NCBI GenBank assembly: GCA_001179505.1
Contig: CDMY01000997.1
Coordinates: forward strand, 1 to 6,819
DNA from: Vitrella brassicaformis CCMP3155
Lineage: Eukaryota > Protista > Chromerida
Reading direction: 5' to 3'
Length of the DNA stretch: 6,819 bases
Under the pieces are notes generated by a model. The model saw only the letters and a list, made by a program, of their open reading frames with translations. It did no database searches and was not told the DNA's origin. Made by a program: the position numbers and the translations under genes. Shown here in pieces: positions 1-6,819 of this stretch (the first letter of the stretch is position 1; every line of letters starts with the position of its first letter).

Positions 1-539
1 GCAGGTGCTGGTAGAGCTCCTTGACGTCGAAGCTGGTGGTGCACGCCTCCTGGGCCTCCTTCAGACCGCCCTCAACTACCTGTAGGGCCTTACACGAGCT
101 GGCCGTCGACAGCCGGGCGGTCGCGTGGACTGTCTCCTCTTGGCCTTCAGACTGGCCGTTTGCCGTGGCGATGGTTGCCTCCCGGCCCTTGACCGTGCAC
201 TTGAGCTGTGGTGCCCCGCCTGACTCGGTGAAGATCTTCATGGGCCGGTCGAAGGCAACCTGCTGAACGAAGACGGGCTGGCTGGGGCTTGCGTTGCTCA
301 CTGTCGATGTCCAGAGCGCACCGAACAAATCCACATAGCCCGCACCGGGCATCACAGCAACACTGAAAGACAAGGTCCAAGGAGCATGCGCCTTCGATCC
401 TCTGTTTTCTCTCCTTTTCTGTGCTTGCTTACCCAGTAACGACATGGTCTGCGAAGAGCTGCTGCACGTCCTTGCGCAGCTGTGTCTGGAACACCACAGA
501 TCGGTCAGCCCCGATGCTCTGTTTGCCGATGAGGGGGTG
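1..539 (-). other. Domain: dehydratase (DH), N-terminal hot-dog half, truncated by the window edge
   Basis: Starts HPLIG. The catalytic HxxxGxxxxP motif (HVVTGVAVMP, His at 444-446) is completed only after splicing intron 363..432. It is followed by PGAGYVDL, HATARL and FDVKELYQHL, with no stop from 362 to 1. Confidence 0.88.
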
Positions 540-3500
540 GCTGACTTCCTTCCACGGGAACGGCTGCCTGTTCTCGAACAGCCCCTCGGGCTGCGGCGCC
601 AGCTTGACCTCGATCTCCTGCATCACCGCTGACACCGTCGACAGCTCGCTCTTGCCCGGTTCAAGGACCGCCAGCCAGTTGAGGCTGTCCGAGGAGCCGA
701 GGCTGTCGCGACCCACACACTGCTTGCCGAGGTTGATGAGCGTCGGGCGGGGGCCCACCTCCACGAGGATACTGCAGCCCTCGGCGACGGTGGCCGTGAT
801 GCCGTCCATGAAGCGGACTGGCAGCGTGATGTGGCTGGCCCAGAAGTGACTGCTAAGGACCTCGTCGCCGGCCACCTTGCCACTCACGTTGGACACGAAG
901 GGTATGGAGGGCTTGTGCAGCTTGACCGAATCGAGCACCTCACGGAAGGGCTGCACGGTGTCCTCCATCAGCGGAGAGTGGAAGGCATGCGACACCGCCA
1001 GCAGACGATAGCTCTTGTCCGCATTCAGAGCTCTCATCACTGAGCCAACCTCGCTGCGAGTCCCGGACACCACGACACTCTTGGGGCCGTTGACGGCCGC
1101 AACAGAGACGGTCATGGTCTCATCCTCGCCCACACTTGCAATGCCCTTGAACACCTCCTCCTCGCTGAGACGACAGGCGGCCATGACGCCATCATTCTGT
1201 GGAGCGTCGTTCATGATTCGTGCTCGTTCCGCGATGAGCTTGAGTCCGTCCTCGAGGCTCATCACGCCGGCGACGGTGGCGGCCACGTACTCGCCCATGC
1301 TGTGGCCCATGACCACATCGGGCGTCACACCACGGCTCCGCAGCAGCTCCGCCAACGAATACTCAACAGCGAAGATCAGCGGCTGGGAGAACCGAGTCTG
1401 GTCGACGAGCTTCTGCATCTTCTGGCGCTCCTCCTGGTCGTCGCCTGGGAAGAGGACGTCGAGAGCCTTGATGGGCGCCAGATAGCGGTCAAGGATGCCG
1501 ATACATTGGTCCAGGCTCTGCTGGAACACCTTGTCGTTCTCGTACAGCTCCTTGCCCATGTCCAGGTGCTGCGACCCCTGGCCTGTGAACAGAAAAGCCA
1601 CTTTCTTCTTCTCGGCCTTGACGGGCACATTGGCCGCCTTGGTGGACTTGGTCGCCGGAGGCCTGTCCACCGCGGGCGCCTCCTCGAGAATGACGTGGGC
1701 ATTGGCGCCACCAAATCCGAAGGAGCTCACACCGGCGAGGAGCCGCCGGCCGGGCGGCGGTATGAGTGGGAGGGTCTCAGTGGGGAAGGCGACGGGGAGG
1801 CCCACGATGTCGATGTGCGGGTTGAGGGAGCTGAAGTGGAGATTGGGGGGCGTCTGCTTCATCTGCAGCACGAGCACAGCCTTGAGCACACCCGCAATAC
1901 CCGCCGCTCCCTCCAAGTGGCCCATGTTGGTCTTGAGGGCGCCCAGCACGAGAGGGTGCTCCGACTCCCGCCCTCCCGCAAACATGGCCTTGAGCGCGCC
2001 CACCTCGATCGGGTCACCGAGGGACGTACCCGTGCCGTGCGTCTCGATAAAGTCGATTGATGATGGTTGGAGGCCGGCCTGGCGCAGCGCCGACCTGATG
2101 ACCTGCTGCTGGGCCGGCCCGCTGGGGGCTGTCAGACTGGCTGCCCTCCCCCCGTGGTTGACGGCCGTGCCTCTCAGGCAAGCCAACACGCCCACCGAGT
2201 CGGCGGATGTGTCGGAAAGTCGCTTGAGGATGATGGCGGCCGCACCCTCACCACGAACATAGCCGTTGGCCGACGTATCGAATGCCTTGCATCGGGCGTC
2301 GGGAGCCATCATGCGCGCCTTGCAGAACCCCACCGTAACTTGCGGGTTGAGCATCAGGTTGATGCCGGCCCCCACACACGTGCTGCACACGCCTCGTCGG
2401 AGGTTGGAGACGGCGATGTCGAGGGCCACGAGTGAGGATGAGCATGCCGTGTCGACCGTCATGGATGGCCCCTGGAGGCCGAGAATGTAGGAGATGCGGT
2501 TGCTGAGGATAGATGCGGCGGCCCCGCTGGTGCTGTAGCTGCTCNNNNNNNNNNNNNNNNNNNNNNNNNNNNNNNNNNNNNNNNNNNNNNNNNNNNNNNN
2601 NNNNNNNNNNNNNNNNNNNNNNNNNNNNNNNNNNNNNNNNNNNNNNNNNNNNNNNNNNNNNNNNNNNNNNNNNNNNNNNNNNNNNNNNNNNNNNNNNNNN
2701 NNNNNNNNNNNNNNNNNNNNNNNNNNNNNNNNNNNNNNNNNNNNNNNNNNNNNNNNNNNNNNNNNNNNNNNNNNNNNNNNNNNNNNNNNNNNNNNNNNNN
2801 NNNNNNNNNNNNNNNNNNNNNNNNNNNNNNNNNNNNNNNNNNNNTCGAACATCTCTGCGCCGTCGATGAAGCCCCCCTCCCGGATGTACATTTTGCCCTC
2901 CATGTCGGGGTCCCCATCGTAGTGCTCGTCGACGTTCCAGCGGGTCAGCGGCACCTCCACTATCGCATCGCCGCCGGTGCTCAACAGCTCCCACAGCGAC
3001 CCCAGCGACGAGCTGCCGCCCGGCAGACGGCACGCCGCACCCACGATGGCGATAGGCTCGTCTGCCCTGATGCCGCCCACCAGTGTGCCGCCCTGTTGCG
3101 CGGCCTCCTCAGTGGCGCGGCCCTCCAGCTCGCCGACGAGGAAGTCGATGATGTCCTTCGTCGTTGGGTAATTGAAAATGAGCGTCGGCTCGATGTGCAG
3201 CGACAGCGTCTGGGACACGTTCCCGGCAAACTCCACCGCACCAAGGGAGTCGACACCCAGCTCGTGCAGAGGCGCGTCGAAGTCGAAAGTGTCGGTGTTG
3301 CCCAGGATCTTGGCCGCCGACGCCAATACTGCTGACTGGACCATCTCCCTCCTCTGTCCCATGGAGAGGCCCTGGCCCGTTGCCTTTTCCTGTGTCGCAA
3401 CGGAGCCGCCAGACGGCCTCGTCCGAGCAGCTGGGGAATCATCCTTCTCTCCTCCTGCGGCACACTCGGCTACTGACGCCTCGTTGGTGGGTAGGTGAGC

Positions 3501-5976
3501 TGCTGCGGCCTGCTCCTCGTTGTCCGTGTCGGGCCCAGCCACAACCTCATCCCAGATGAGGCCCGCCAGCTCCCTGTTGAGGAGGAGTTCACGCGTCTTG
3601 AACCGACGCACTTTGCCTGACGAGAGGCAGCGACAGAAGCCAAGGACAACACTGGTTGAATCTGACATTGTCCATCGGCATATGTGTACGTCAAATAGAC
3701 GTACCTGCTGTTGTCTTTGGGATGGTTCTTGGTTCGAGCAGCCATATGTGGAAGACGGGAAGCCCCACCTTGGCCGAGACGGCCTTGCATATCTCGCGGC
3801 CGACTTGCCTGTATTGAGCCCCTTTACTGGTGAACGCCTGCCACAGCCCCGAGAGCCATCCCAACGCCGTGCCGTTGTCCATCTTGATCTCGACCGCCAG
3901 ACCCAGCCGCTCGTGATCATCCACCTCCAGTGAGAACGCCGCCACGCATCCCTTGCGGACCGATTCGCAGCTCTCTGCTGCCTCCTCGATATCTTGGGGG
4001 AAGTAGTTGCGGCCCCGGACGATGATCATGTCCTTGATGCGGCCGGCGATGAAGAGTTCTTCCTTGTAGAGGAAGCCGCTGTCACCTGTGCGGAAGTAAA
4101 ACGGCTCCGACTTGTCCCCCGTGCGGTAGATGCACTGCCCGTGGAACGACTCCCGCGTCTTGTCGGGAAGGTTGAAGTAGCCACGGGCCGTGCTGCCAGA
4201 CATGATCCACACCTCGCCGCGCCGGCCCTCTGGCAGCTCCTTCAGAGTCTCGGGATCAACAATTCGAACTGAACGAAGCAGTCGGTGATCGACCGGCGTT
4301 GGTCATGGTGGGGTGTGTGTGTGTGCCTGTGTGTGTGTGTGTGTATGTGTGTGTACCGTCTATCCCAGGGAAGGGCACGCCGCATCCGACGAGCCTCTGG
4401 TAGCCGCCTGCGTCCGTATCAGCTTCATCCACCAACTCCACCACACCCTGGCCACACACACAGTCGGATGGTTGTCTCGTGTGCAGCCAGCCCATGTGTG
4501 CCGTGTGTTCGTTCATCATGTACTTGGCTCCTCAATTTTTTGGCATCGACATTGATGATGAGCGGCTCGCTATCGATGCCTTTGCGGCCTGTCACGAACA
4601 AGGTGTTCTCAGCCAATCCATACGCCGGAAGGAACATGCTTCGACGCACTCCTTTGCTCTCAAATTTCTGTTCAATAAGTCACATAGAGTGCGCACAGAC
4701 AGCCAGGGTGCTCATGAATCCTACGTTCTGTCGACAGCTAGCTTGCCTGCCGCACGCACGTACCTTGACGAATTTCTCCACGGTGGCTACTCGGATTGGT
4801 TCTGCCCCGCACAGGAACCCCATGACGTGGCTGAGGTCCAGGTCGTGAAACACGCTGTCGGGCATCTTGCGCGTCACCAGCTCAAAGGCGAAGTTCGGCG
4901 CAGCACACGCACACGCCTTGTAGCGACTCATGCCTGCGTGAATGCGAACGGCACACAGACCGAAAGCCATGCATTCAAGTCAAGCACCACTCGGCGGTCA
5001 GCTCGAGACTCGTGCTGACAGGCACCTCACCTTGCAGCCACAGGTAGGGCTTCCTGACGAAGTCGAGCGGTGAGATCTGGTAGAGCTCACATCCAAAGAA
5101 GATGGGCGTGCAGAGGAAGCCGATGAGCCCCATGTCGTGGTAGACGGGAAGCCAGGAGAAGAGCCGCAGCCGGTGGCCCCGCACCCGCTCGCTGATCTCG
5201 TGACGCTGCATCAGGATCTCGCGCGTCCTGGTGTACGGCTGGCCCGTCACTGTGATGTTGGGAATGGTCGGGTCGTCGATGTTGCTGTCACAGCCGTAGG
5301 CTGAGGCGCAGCAATGGACGTTGTGCAGCAGCGACCCGTGCGTGACTATCACCCCCTTGGGCGCCGCTGTCGACCCCGATGTGAACTGCAAAAAAGCAAT
5401 GTCACTCAGGCCGATGGACGGGGGGGTGAAGGACGCCTCGGGCTTGTCGTCTGCGGCCGTCCGCTTGAGTGCGTCGCTGGTGAGGATCCACTCGATGGAT
5501 CTCCACCTGTTGTCCTTGGCATAAAGGCCCACAACGGGGGCGATCCTCTGGTAGAAGGTGTTGGTGAGCGAGTAGCGCACCTCGGTGCTCTCGGCGATGT
5601 CGCAGAAGCGCGGCACATCGATGTCTGCCTTATTGGGGGCGGGGGGATACACAGGCACCGCAACGACGCCCGTGTAGAGGCAGGCGAGGAAGGCGATGAT
5701 GAAGTCGGTGCCGGGTGGGTAGCACAGGATGACTCGATCGCCCACCGACAGGCCAAGCTCCTCTATCAGAAACGCCCCGAGCCGCTGCACCTTCCTGAAG
5801 AGCTCACTGTATGTCAGCACCTCGGCCGGCTCCCCATTGCCGTCGAGCCATGTGATGGCGGGATGCTGTGGTATCTCATCCGCCCACTTGGCGAGGGCTG
5901 TGCCGAATGCCGACGCCCCATAAAGCTGGTGCAGCTGTGAGAGATCATGAGAGATTGGTCGGGGAGGGACCTCCAT
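1..5976 (-). CDS. Type I modular PKS/FAS megasynthase, 5' part (FAAL-ACP-KS-AT-DH...), 7 exons visible, 3'-truncated by the window edge
   Basis: Manual splicing gives one continuous frame. Exons are 5976-5031 (946 nt), 4933-4764 (170), 4667-4524 (144), 4447-4357 (91), 4268-3705 (564), 3616-433 (3184, includes the N gap) and 362-1. All six introns are GT-AG with matching phases (1,0,0,1,1,2), and each junction restores an expected motif: LWLQ-G-MSRYKA, EKFVK-KFESKG, LRSQ-GVVEL, PGID-V-RIVDPET, PKTTA-G-KVRR, DHVVT-G-VAVMP. ATG 5976 (gctATGg) is the first in-frame ATG after an in-frame TGA at 6031-6033. Confidence 0.93.
363..432 (-). other. Spliceosomal intron 6 of the PKS gene (70 nt, phase 2)
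   Basis: Donor GG|GTAAGC and acceptor ttgtcttTCAG|T. Splicing removes the TAA at 429-431 and restores the DH motif HVVTGVAVMP. Confidence 0.93.
700..1601 (-). other. Domain: acyltransferase (AT), predicted malonyl-CoA specific
   Basis: VAFLFTGQGSQ, TRFSQP, GHSMG with active Ser at 1299-1301, conserved Arg in ERARIM, VAAVNGP, SHAFHSP (HAFH at 978-989), PVRF and EVGP. The 3' boundary is approximate. Confidence 0.93.
1680..3059 (-). other. Domain: ketosynthase (KS), interrupted by the N gap
   Basis: Starts EPIAIVGAACRLPG. Catalytic Cys in DTACSSS (2442-2444), His in ETHGTGT (2037-2039) and His in KTNMGHLE (1917-1919). Ends GVSSFGFGGANAHVILEE. Confidence 0.96.
2545..2844. other. Sequence gap (300 N) inside the KS-coding region
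   Basis: Run of N from 2545 to 2844. The reading frame is the same on both sides (AEMFD...SSYSTSG). Confidence 0.99.
3126..3344 (-). other. Domain: loading acyl carrier protein (ACP)
   Basis: DAPLHELGVDSLGAVEF with the phosphopantetheine Ser at 3246-3248, followed by the ACP C-terminal signature PTLIFNYPT. Confidence 0.92.
3617..3704 (-). other. Spliceosomal intron 5 of the PKS gene (88 nt, phase 1)
   Basis: Donor CAG|GTACGT and acceptor ctctcgtCAG|GC. Splicing restores the A10 motif PKTTAGK. Confidence 0.93.
4269..4356 (-). other. Spliceosomal intron 4 of the PKS gene (88 nt, phase 1), contains an AC microsatellite
   Basis: Donor G|GTACAC and acceptor cttcgttCAG|TT. Splicing gives PFPGID-V-RIVDPET. 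Confidence 0.88.
4313..4354. repeat. Imperfect (GT/AC)n microsatellite
   Basis: gtgtgtgtgtgtgcctgtgtgtgtgtgtgtgtatgtgtgtgt is seen directly. It starts immediately after the intron 4 donor. Confidence 0.97.
4448..4523 (-). other. Spliceosomal intron 3 of the PKS gene (76 nt, phase 0)
   Basis: Donor CAA|GTACAT (weaker) and acceptor tgtggcCAG|GGT. The intron is needed to change frame into GVVELVDEAD. Confidence 0.8.
4668..4763 (-). other. Spliceosomal intron 2 of the PKS gene (96 nt, phase 0)
   Basis: Donor AAG|GTACGT and acceptor ttgaaCAG|AAA. Splicing joins EKFVK to KFESKGVRRSMFLPAYG. Confidence 0.9.
4934..5030 (-). other. Spliceosomal intron 1 of the PKS gene (97 nt, phase 1)
   Basis: Donor G|GTGAGG and acceptor cattcacgCAG|GC. 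Splicing joins LWLQ to G-MSRYK. Confidence 0.92.
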
Positions 5977-6430
5977 AGCGCTGATCGATGTGCTGTGAGT
6001 GTGGGCCACGCCACGAAGTCCAGAGCGAGCTCAGCGGGGCTGCTTCCGGGCGATGCGGTCTTGCCTGCCGTTTGAAGGGAGTGAGGATAGCCGGCGAGCT
6101 CAGCCACGTCGATCTGTGATAAAGATCTATGTAGCGACGTGCTTCAGACCCGCTCACACGTCCACATCTGCATGAGAAGAGAAAACAAGCGTGGCCTGCC
6201 TTCCGGTGAGGCTGCCGATGGATCAATTCCATGCTTGCTGACCTCCGAATGCTCCTGTTCGAGCCCACTCATGATGGCTTGTAATGATTTTCTGTCCTTC
6301 TCCCCTCAAGCGTTACACGACCAGCCCTACACCCTCGGGGTAATTTCGCTTCTGTTTGAGCCTTTGAAGGGCAGTGGAGGCCTGCTGGCGCGTAGTTAGA
6401 GTCAGGTGTCGCAGCATCTCTGTCGGCGTC
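5977..6430. promoter_or_regulatory. Divergent (head-to-head) intergenic region, putative bidirectional promoter and 5' UTRs
   Basis: 454 bp between the minus-strand PKS ATG (5976) and the plus-strand ATG (6431). The call is positional only, and no specific core promoter element was identified. Confidence 0.55.
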
Positions 6431-6819
6431 ATGTCTGCGAGTCAGCCCATGTCGGTCAAGTTCGAGGGCTCTGAGGACACTCTGACCATATCAGAGGCCG
6501 TGGCGCAGCAGTACACCTTCTTCCAAGCCGTAAGGAACCGATCATGGCACTGCATGTGCTGCTGGGTGCAAGATCTGACTGCCTTCGTGTGTTGTGCTGC
6601 AGTTGCTGGACGGCGGTTTCCAGGAGTCGGCCGAGCGCACAGTGACGCTCAAGGAGATCTCCCGGCCAATAGCTGCCGTCGTGCTGCAGAGGAGAAACGA
6701 CATGCTCAAAGATATCACACGAGAGGTACCGGGGTGCACACTGCCGTCTTTCCCATGTCGGATGCTGCTGTCACTCATTGTGCGTCTGTCTGTGCTAGAA
6801 TCTGTTGGATTGCTTGTCG
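6431..6819 (+). CDS. BTB/POZ (SKP1/Elongin-C-like fold) domain protein, 5' part; join(6431..6529, 6603..6725, 6799..>6819)
   Basis: The spliced translation is MSASQPMSVKFEGSEDTLTISEAVAQQYTFFQA|LLDGGFQESAERTVTLKEISRPIAAVVLQRRNDMLKDITRE|NLLDCLS. FFQALLDGGFQESAERTVTLKEIS matches the BTB consensus (YFxAMFxGGFxESxxxxIxLxDIS), and ITRENLLDCL matches the later LTxENVLELL helix. Both introns are phase-0 GT-AG. The family call is by eye, with no HMM search. Confidence 0.72.
   Translation, partial: MSASQPMSVKFEGSEDTLTISEAVAQQYTFFQAVRNRSWHCMCCWVQDLTAFVCCAAVAGRRFPGVGRAHSDAQGDLPANSCRRAAEEKRHAQRYHTRGTGVHTAVFPMSDAAVTHCASVCARICWIAC
6530..6602 (+). other. Intron 1 of the BTB-like gene (73 nt)
   Basis: Donor GCC|GTAAGG, CTGAC branch-like motif at 6575-6579 and acceptor tgtgctgCAG|TTG. 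Confidence 0.85.
6726..6798 (+). other. Intron 2 of the BTB-like gene (73 nt)
   Basis: Donor GAG|GTACCG, CTCAT branch-like motif and acceptor tctgtgcTAG|AAT. Confidence 0.72.

Follow-up and report, generated by a model that had tools for sequence, protein, structure and literature searches.

A spliced Vitrella brassicaformis gene encoding the FAAL-ACP-KS-AT-DH front end of a probable apicomplexan-type megasynthase

The Cryptosporidium enzymes CpFAS1 and CpPKS1, and the fatty acid synthases (FAS) and polyketide synthases (PKS) of coccidia, open with an acyl ligase (AL) followed by an acyl carrier protein (ACP). In CpFAS1 this AL-ACP pair is succeeded by modules of ketosynthase (KS), acyltransferase (AT), dehydratase (DH), enoylreductase (ER), ketoreductase (KR) and ACP, and the logic of both the loading unit and the modules has been demonstrated experimentally (PMC2995488). 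The cyanobacterial olefin synthase (Ols) also starts in this manner, with a fatty acyl-AMP ligase (FAAL) in the order FAAL-ACP-KS-AT (PMC11837247, PMC10114076). FAALs in alveolates are mentioned in PMC11837247, and the FAS-I/PKS genes of chromerids were catalogued in 2020 (PMC7464705). The stretch considered here, 6,819 nt of contig CDMY01000997.1 from the chromerid Vitrella brassicaformis CCMP3155 (referred to as the window), carries on its minus strand the beginning of a gene of this kind, a spliced FAAL-ACP-KS-AT-DH front end.

An initial annotation of this DNA had proposed a spliced gene with FAAL, ACP, KS, AT and DH in that order, and the exon model, together with exon-wise Pfam and NCBIfam matches, confirmed that the gene is real. 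Exon 1 opens with the first in-frame ATG at 5976, located by a stop-to-stop scan and inspection of the junctions. All six introns are GT-AG, 70–97 nt long, and their phases hold a single reading frame; exon 7 (362–1) is open up to the first base of the window, so the gene is truncated by the window edge. Profile, structure and protein searches were all run on single exons, and the gene model rests on the DNA sequence and homology; tblastn of FAAL-ACP-KS relatives on the window reproduced the same exons. Every catalytic motif visible in the window is intact, as the annotation had stated, and its guess at a probably free-living alveolate or alga was sound, the best protein match being an unnamed partial V. 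brassicaformis CCMP3155 protein of 1220 aa (P0001, 96% identity). It is very probable that the window holds the promoter-proximal part of a nuclear, spliced V. brassicaformis gene for an apicomplexan-type type I fatty-acid/polyketide megasynthase, a confidence that covers gene, family and proposed mechanism jointly. The features of the gene are as follows.

1–5976, minus strand: partial gene of seven exons, about 1,786 codons if the assembly gap stands for 198 nt; 3′ end past the window; tblastn matches of homologues collinear
5031–5976, minus strand: exon 1, from the ATG at 5976, FAAL N-terminal domain with P-loop TSGSTAAPKG (5353–5382) and YHDMGL (5125–5142); Pfam AMP-binding 1.6e-37, FAAL models of NCBIfam, PDB 7R7E/F/G 1e-38
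4764–4933, minus strand: exon 2, FAAL, PRK05850 profile positions 258–311 (NCBIfam); junction KPYLWLQ/GMSRYK identical in gene model P0001
4524–4667, minus strand: exon 3, YGLAE (4608–4622) and start of the putative FAAL-specific insertion region; NCBIfam, FAAL chains in PDB
4357–4447, minus strand: exon 4, variable part of the putative FAAL insertion region as far as the VGCG..PG segment; placed by collinear P0122 and P0191 tblastn matches and by gene model P0001
3705–4268, minus strand: exon 5, end of the FAAL N-domain and FAAL C-terminal subdomain, with TGD and GRIKDMIIVRGRN (4006–4044); FAAL NCBIfam 2.7e-34, PDB 7R7E 8e-27
3617–3704, minus strand: intron 5, 88 nt, GT-AG, within the FAAL A10 motif, at the boundary between the ligase exons and the ACP-KS-AT exon; same junction in gene model P0001
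433–3616, minus strand: exon 6, last FAAL residues with the A10 lysine (G/KVRR), acidic/Ala-rich linker, ACP, KS, AT and start of DH; Pfam, NCBIfam, motifs
3138–3332, minus strand: loading ACP, phosphopantetheine serine in GVDS (3246–3257); Pfam PP-binding 6e-13
1833–3059, minus strand: ketosynthase, Cys in DTACSS (2436–2453), His in HGTGT (2025–2039), His in NMGH (1917–1928); Pfam KS_N and KS_C, CurL 4MZ0 1.3e-173; split by the run of N
2545–2844, no strand: assembly gap of 300 N in the KS N-domain, probably hiding about 198 nt of exon 6 (profiles, homologues, sister copy)
711–1595, minus strand: acyltransferase of malonyl type, GQGSQ (1569–1583), GHSMG (1293–1307), HAFH (978–989); Pfam Acyl_transf_1 7e-54, 42% identity to the CurL AT
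1–539, minus strand: PKS dehydratase, N-terminal half, HPLIG (525–539), HxxxGxxxxP split by intron 6 (363–432); split PKS_DH_N, collinear P0005 and P0010

The Pfam AMP-binding profile matches exon 1 over positions 2–245 and the start of exon 5 over positions 354–384. FAAL families of NCBIfam are among the top matches for exons 1, 2, 3 and 5, and the fatty-acid--AMP ligase model PRK05850 runs collinearly through them, starting with positions 7–203 in exon 1, then 258–311 in exon 2, 314–357 in exon 3 and 384–555 in exon 5. Exon 4 occupies the 26 unmatched PRK05850 positions between exons 3 and 5, and on its own it gave no match in Pfam, NCBIfam or PDB. The single top NCBIfam match was a model for nonribosomal peptide synthetases (NRPS) and PKS for exon 1, and the CoA-ligase-named PRK07768 for exon 2, with FAAL models (PRK05850, FadD21/28/32) among the top-scoring alongside. 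The closest PDB chains are 7R7E/F/G, the FAAL domain of a Picosynechococcus PCC 7002 PKS (PMC11837247), followed by the Legionella FAAL 3KXW, FadD23, FadD28 and FadD32. Exon 3 by itself retrieved the FAAL chains FadD32, 7R7F and 3KXW from PDB, plus two unrelated chains at chance level; none of its matching chains is named as a CoA ligase. The core motifs of the ANL superfamily were all found (P-loop TSGSTAAPKG, YGLAE, TGD, GRxKD, and PKTxxGK with the A10 lysine), and YHDMGL and GRIKDMIIVRGRN could also be read.

From the end of exon 2 to the start of exon 5 there are about 80 residues, compared with 46 positions of the generic AMP-binding profile. Exons 2, 3 and 4 together (about 136 aa) correspond to residues 250–381 of 7R7F, and the tail of exon 3 aligns to residues 328–372 of FadD32. 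In position and length this stretch agrees with the insertion that PMC11837247 describes as specific to FAALs, pointing to such an insertion between YGLAE and the hinge. The assignment of the ligase to the FAAL families and structures rather than to the acyl-CoA synthetases, made in the initial annotation, is therefore supported by both the family models and the PDB chains.

Downstream of the ligase, the KS and AT domains show the features of a module with its own (cis) AT: a KS Cys-His-His triad, the AT serine in GHSxG and the malonyl-type HAFH motif, each aligned to CurL. The nearest solved structure for this KS-AT part is CurL 4MZ0, with animal FAS scoring far more weakly (about 1e-70). The linker between KS and AT comprises 26 residues (HVILEEAP to FLFTGQGSQ; window 1602–1679, minus strand) as against about 115 in CurL. 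A full-size linker subdomain of about 100 aa was not found there, and KAsynt_C_assoc matches only over positions 2–75 of 111. In homologues P0002, P0004–P0006 and P0010 the alignment through KS-AT shows no large gap, which suggests that the short linker is typical of the clade.

The DH was recognised from two weak, collinear PKS_DH_N matches split by intron 6, covering profile positions 1–35 (end of exon 6) and 39–89 (exon 7). Its HxxxGxxxxP motif (DHVVTG/VAVMP) is completed by the splice over this intron, and both a Chromera protein (P0005) and a transcript-derived sequence (P0010) align across the junction without interruption.

The assembly gap interrupts the KS, with Pfam KS_N matched over positions 2–71 before it and 143–251 after it, where KS_C and KAsynt_C_assoc also follow. 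The profile positions lost are 72–142 of the Pfam model (71 positions) and 73–140 of the NCBIfam PKS model (68), and in four homologues 62–68 residues fall between the alignments that flank the gap. A sister copy of the gene on contig CDMY01000506.1 (L001) lies flush with both flanks and has 198 nt in between (13250–13447), in frame, with 67 open codons of typical KS sequence and neither stop nor intron. As 198 and 300 are both divisible by three, the flanks share one frame with either length. On the evidence of the sister copy and homology, they are compatible with a single uninterrupted exon of which about 198 nt are unread.

Proteins with AMP-binding, PP-binding and KS domains on one chain, retrieved with the whole of P0001, come from Chromera velia (P0121), a Vitrella paralogue (P0122) and metagenomes (P0123, P0168). 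FAAL-ACP-KS on a single polypeptide, collinear with the exons, is found in a type I FAS of Cystoisospora suis (P0191), P0122 and P0168. The ligase is 49–58% identical to the C. suis, Chromera and Vitrella proteins and 31–40% identical to metagenomic or bacterial-like ones, and by sequence its closest relatives are alveolate megasynthases. The KS phylogeny that the initial annotation had proposed as a check was reconstructed by a quick maximum-likelihood method from the part of the domain after the gap (48 sequences, with full-length apicomplexan KSs left out by search length limits). The window and its sister copy fall in a clade of 15 with an SH-aLRT support of 100, along with the Vitrella paralogue, Chromera, GHVU01, Chrysoparadoxa and some metagenomic partials, apart from the cyanobacterial and actinobacterial KSs. 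Inside this otherwise protist clade lie P0002 and P0003, a fragment from a 'Planctomycetes bacterium' metagenome-assembled genome (MAG; 3.2 kb contig) and an Amycolatopsis-labelled protein, which may represent mis-binned eukaryotic DNA or transfer.

Compared with the described systems, the gene agrees most closely with CpFAS1 and the coccidian genes, having an N-terminal acyl ligase-ACP loading unit followed by KS-AT-DH. The likeness to Cryptosporidium and coccidia drawn in the initial annotation is thus carried both by the architecture of CpFAS1 (PMC2995488) and by the C. suis 'type I fatty acid synthase' P0191, which is collinear with exons 1–6 (49–53% identity in the ligase, with 53% in exon 1 and 50% in exon 5, and 68% in the KS core). 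CpFAS1 is intronless, whereas the window gene has six short introns. Among solved structures the best matches are cyanobacterial, namely the FAAL of an Ols-type PKS, 7R7E/F/G, for the ligase (1e-38 and 8e-27) and CurL for KS-AT (1.3e-173). After the AT, however, Ols has a KR where the window gene has a DH (HPLIG, HxxxGxxxxP), so that the Ols layout FAAL-ACP-KS-AT-KR-ACP-ST-TE is departed from at this point, and the KS lies in a clade separate from the cyanobacterial KSs. The mycobacterial FAALs (FadD32/Pks13, FadD28/PpsA-type) are stand-alone proteins, unlike the window ligase, which is fused with its ACP to the synthase. The kind of enzyme is already known, and the departures of this member are its six introns, the very short KS-AT linker and its duplicated state. 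The 2020 catalogue lists a 1220-aa protein, Vbra_16257.t1, of the same length as P0001 (PMC7464705).

The Vitrella paralogue P0122 (contig CDMY01000244.1, L002) shares the FAAL-ACP-KS-AT order at about 49–58% identity and belongs to a distinct locus. Downstream, this locus continues with the AT end, DH, KR, ACP, KS and further domains, a layout that cannot confidently be assumed for the window gene. The public annotation divides the L002 synthase (1–24367) among three models, which encode an AMP-binding piece of 178 aa, P0122 (1204 aa) and a product of 3268 aa with AT-DH-KR-ACP-KS and more; the synthase adjoins genes for an ELO fatty-acid elongase and a Patched/sterol-sensing-domain protein.

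The sister copy, on a 62.7 kb contig of the same V. brassicaformis strain, is 93–97% identical to the window, L001 10001–14882 aligning to window 1110–6047; the coding identity is 94–98% per exon and about 97% over exon 6. This is the locus of P0001, which shares both the gene structure and the divergent upstream neighbour with the window gene, but is cut within the AT by the contig end and so stops earlier than the window gene. The contig carries two 300-N gaps of its own, and the shared convention suggests that both contigs come from one assembly. The public model P0001 jumps these two gaps and omits exon 3, which is intact in L001; the model is hereby corrected for one intact exon and two gapped stretches that had been left out.

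Such a close copy raises the possibility that the window carries no separately working gene, but is either a redundant haplotig or a duplicate of the CDMY01000506.1 gene that is decaying. This is the alternative that survives best, and we regard it as a distinct though doubtful possibility. The 93–97% identity together with the same upstream neighbour, the position of both copies at scaffold ends with a common gap convention, the absence of the window's own protein from the protein collection, and introns that in some cases match between the copies as closely as the exons do, all speak for it. Yet neither copy has a stop or frameshift in any exon, and the splice sites are all intact. Over 975 comparable codons, free of stops in both, dS is 0.066 and dN/dS is 0.35, indicating purifying selection. 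The copies are also not assembly duplicates of identical DNA, as they differ by a 15-nt in-frame indel in exon 1 (near 5200–5215), where the window encodes VTGQP, five residues missing from L001, in a loop of the ligase N-domain, and by 2.5 kb of upstream DNA. Even if the window were a haplotig, the description of the gene would hold.

A second alternative, which we consider quite unlikely, is that the ligase is the product of a separate gene, or is a fused acyl-CoA synthetase, or loads a non-fatty (aromatic or amino acid) starter. The substrates of ANL enzymes are hard to assign by sequence, McyG and beta-aminoacyl-ACP synthetases are found among the weaker PDB matches, and the 'long-chain-fatty-acid--CoA ligase' model PRK07768 scores well too. 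Intron 5, however, splits the A10 motif (PKTTAG/KVRR), so that the motif is complete only through the splice into the ACP-KS exon, and its catalytic lysine shares an exon with ACP-KS-AT, which disfavours a division into separate genes for ligase and synthase. Homologues carry the ligase-synthase fusion on one polypeptide, the insertion region has the length of that in FAALs, and FAAL models and structures lead for the detectable ligase exons, alongside one NRPS/PKS model and PRK07768. A bacterial gene or contaminant contig was rejected as extremely improbable, for although the KS-AT part is 50–56% identical to cyanobacterial PKS KSs and one 'Planctomycetes MAG' partial and one Amycolatopsis protein share the KS clade, the frame is kept only with six spliceosomal-type GT-AG introns, the sister copy sits on a 62.7 kb V. 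brassicaformis contig amid eukaryotic gene models, and the nearest ligase relatives are alveolate.

Several points weigh against the preferred reading, that of a nuclear, apicomplexan-type megasynthase gene. The two PKS_DH_N matches score 16.4 and 15.3 bits, both under the threshold of 27, a search with exon 7 by itself likewise found the DH only below threshold, and the window includes the first half of the DH, the Asp motif being expected beyond it. About 67 residues of the KS are hidden in the gap, where the window's own letters are unread, and a word search with P0001:560-900 (ACP-KS) gave nothing above 61% identity and no near-identical bridging fragment in the protein collection. The window's own protein was likewise not found in that collection when the post-gap part of exon 6 and the whole of P0001 served as queries. 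The exon joins are predictions from the DNA, and the substrate and CoA-independence are presumed from family membership. A stop or frameshift may also occur past the window edge, since the gene is cut there.

If the megasynthase works as its domains suggest, the N-terminal FAAL would activate a free fatty acid, probably of medium to long chain, as acyl-AMP, and the acyl group would move to the phosphopantetheine arm of the fused ACP with no CoA intermediate. The first KS would then take over the chain, while the malonyl-specific AT would charge a downstream ACP with malonate. After condensation, the beta-carbon would be processed by the DH and by reducing domains past the window. The gene structure, the order of domains, the intact motifs and the kinship are observed features of the locus; the substrate and its CoA-independent loading, as well as the number of modules, the mode of release and the product, are putative.

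Upstream of the synthase, the window holds the start of a divergent spliced gene (6431–6819, plus strand), with exons at about 6431–6529 and 6603–6725 and GT-AG splice sites. It is 93% identical at the sister locus, where the model is 534 aa long and has no Pfam matches. About 455 nt separate the start codons of the synthase and this gene, so a bidirectional promoter between the two is likely. The upstream regions of the two copies differ, with L001 7423–9963 facing window 6047–6166, that is, about 2.5 kb extra in L001 where the window has only about 119 nt. Within the extra DNA lie one complete gene model (249 aa) and the greater part of another (160 aa), both devoid of Pfam matches, and a mobile or repeated piece may have been inserted or deleted here. 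Intron 4 of the synthase gene holds a (TG)n-rich microsatellite (4311–4354), and a similar repeat matches L001 1592–1646.

The gene is genuine, yet it belongs to an enzyme family that had already been catalogued and is fairly ordinary within it, with a near-identical copy in GenBank. The terms 'ligase', 'AMP-binding' and 'loading' do not occur in the 2020 catalogue of chromerid genes (PMC7464705), and the ligase annotation is therefore a modest addition. A more speculative proposal, which we think unlikely, is that the two diverged, intact copies arose when a FAAL-primed synthase whose KS-AT linker is drastically shortened was recently duplicated in chromerids alone, and that it makes a wall component of the cyst or sporangium, namely a very-long-chain lipid, alcohol or sulfated lipid. 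If true, this product would be the equivalent of the oocyst-wall lipids proposed for coccidian FAS/PKS, and the products of apicomplexan megasynthases would become directly testable in a free-living, culturable alga. An intact, spliced acyl ligase-ACP loading unit is not confined to the megasynthases of Cryptosporidium and coccidia but occurs as well in their free-living photosynthetic relative, and this supports the view that the loading-unit architecture arose before parasitism.

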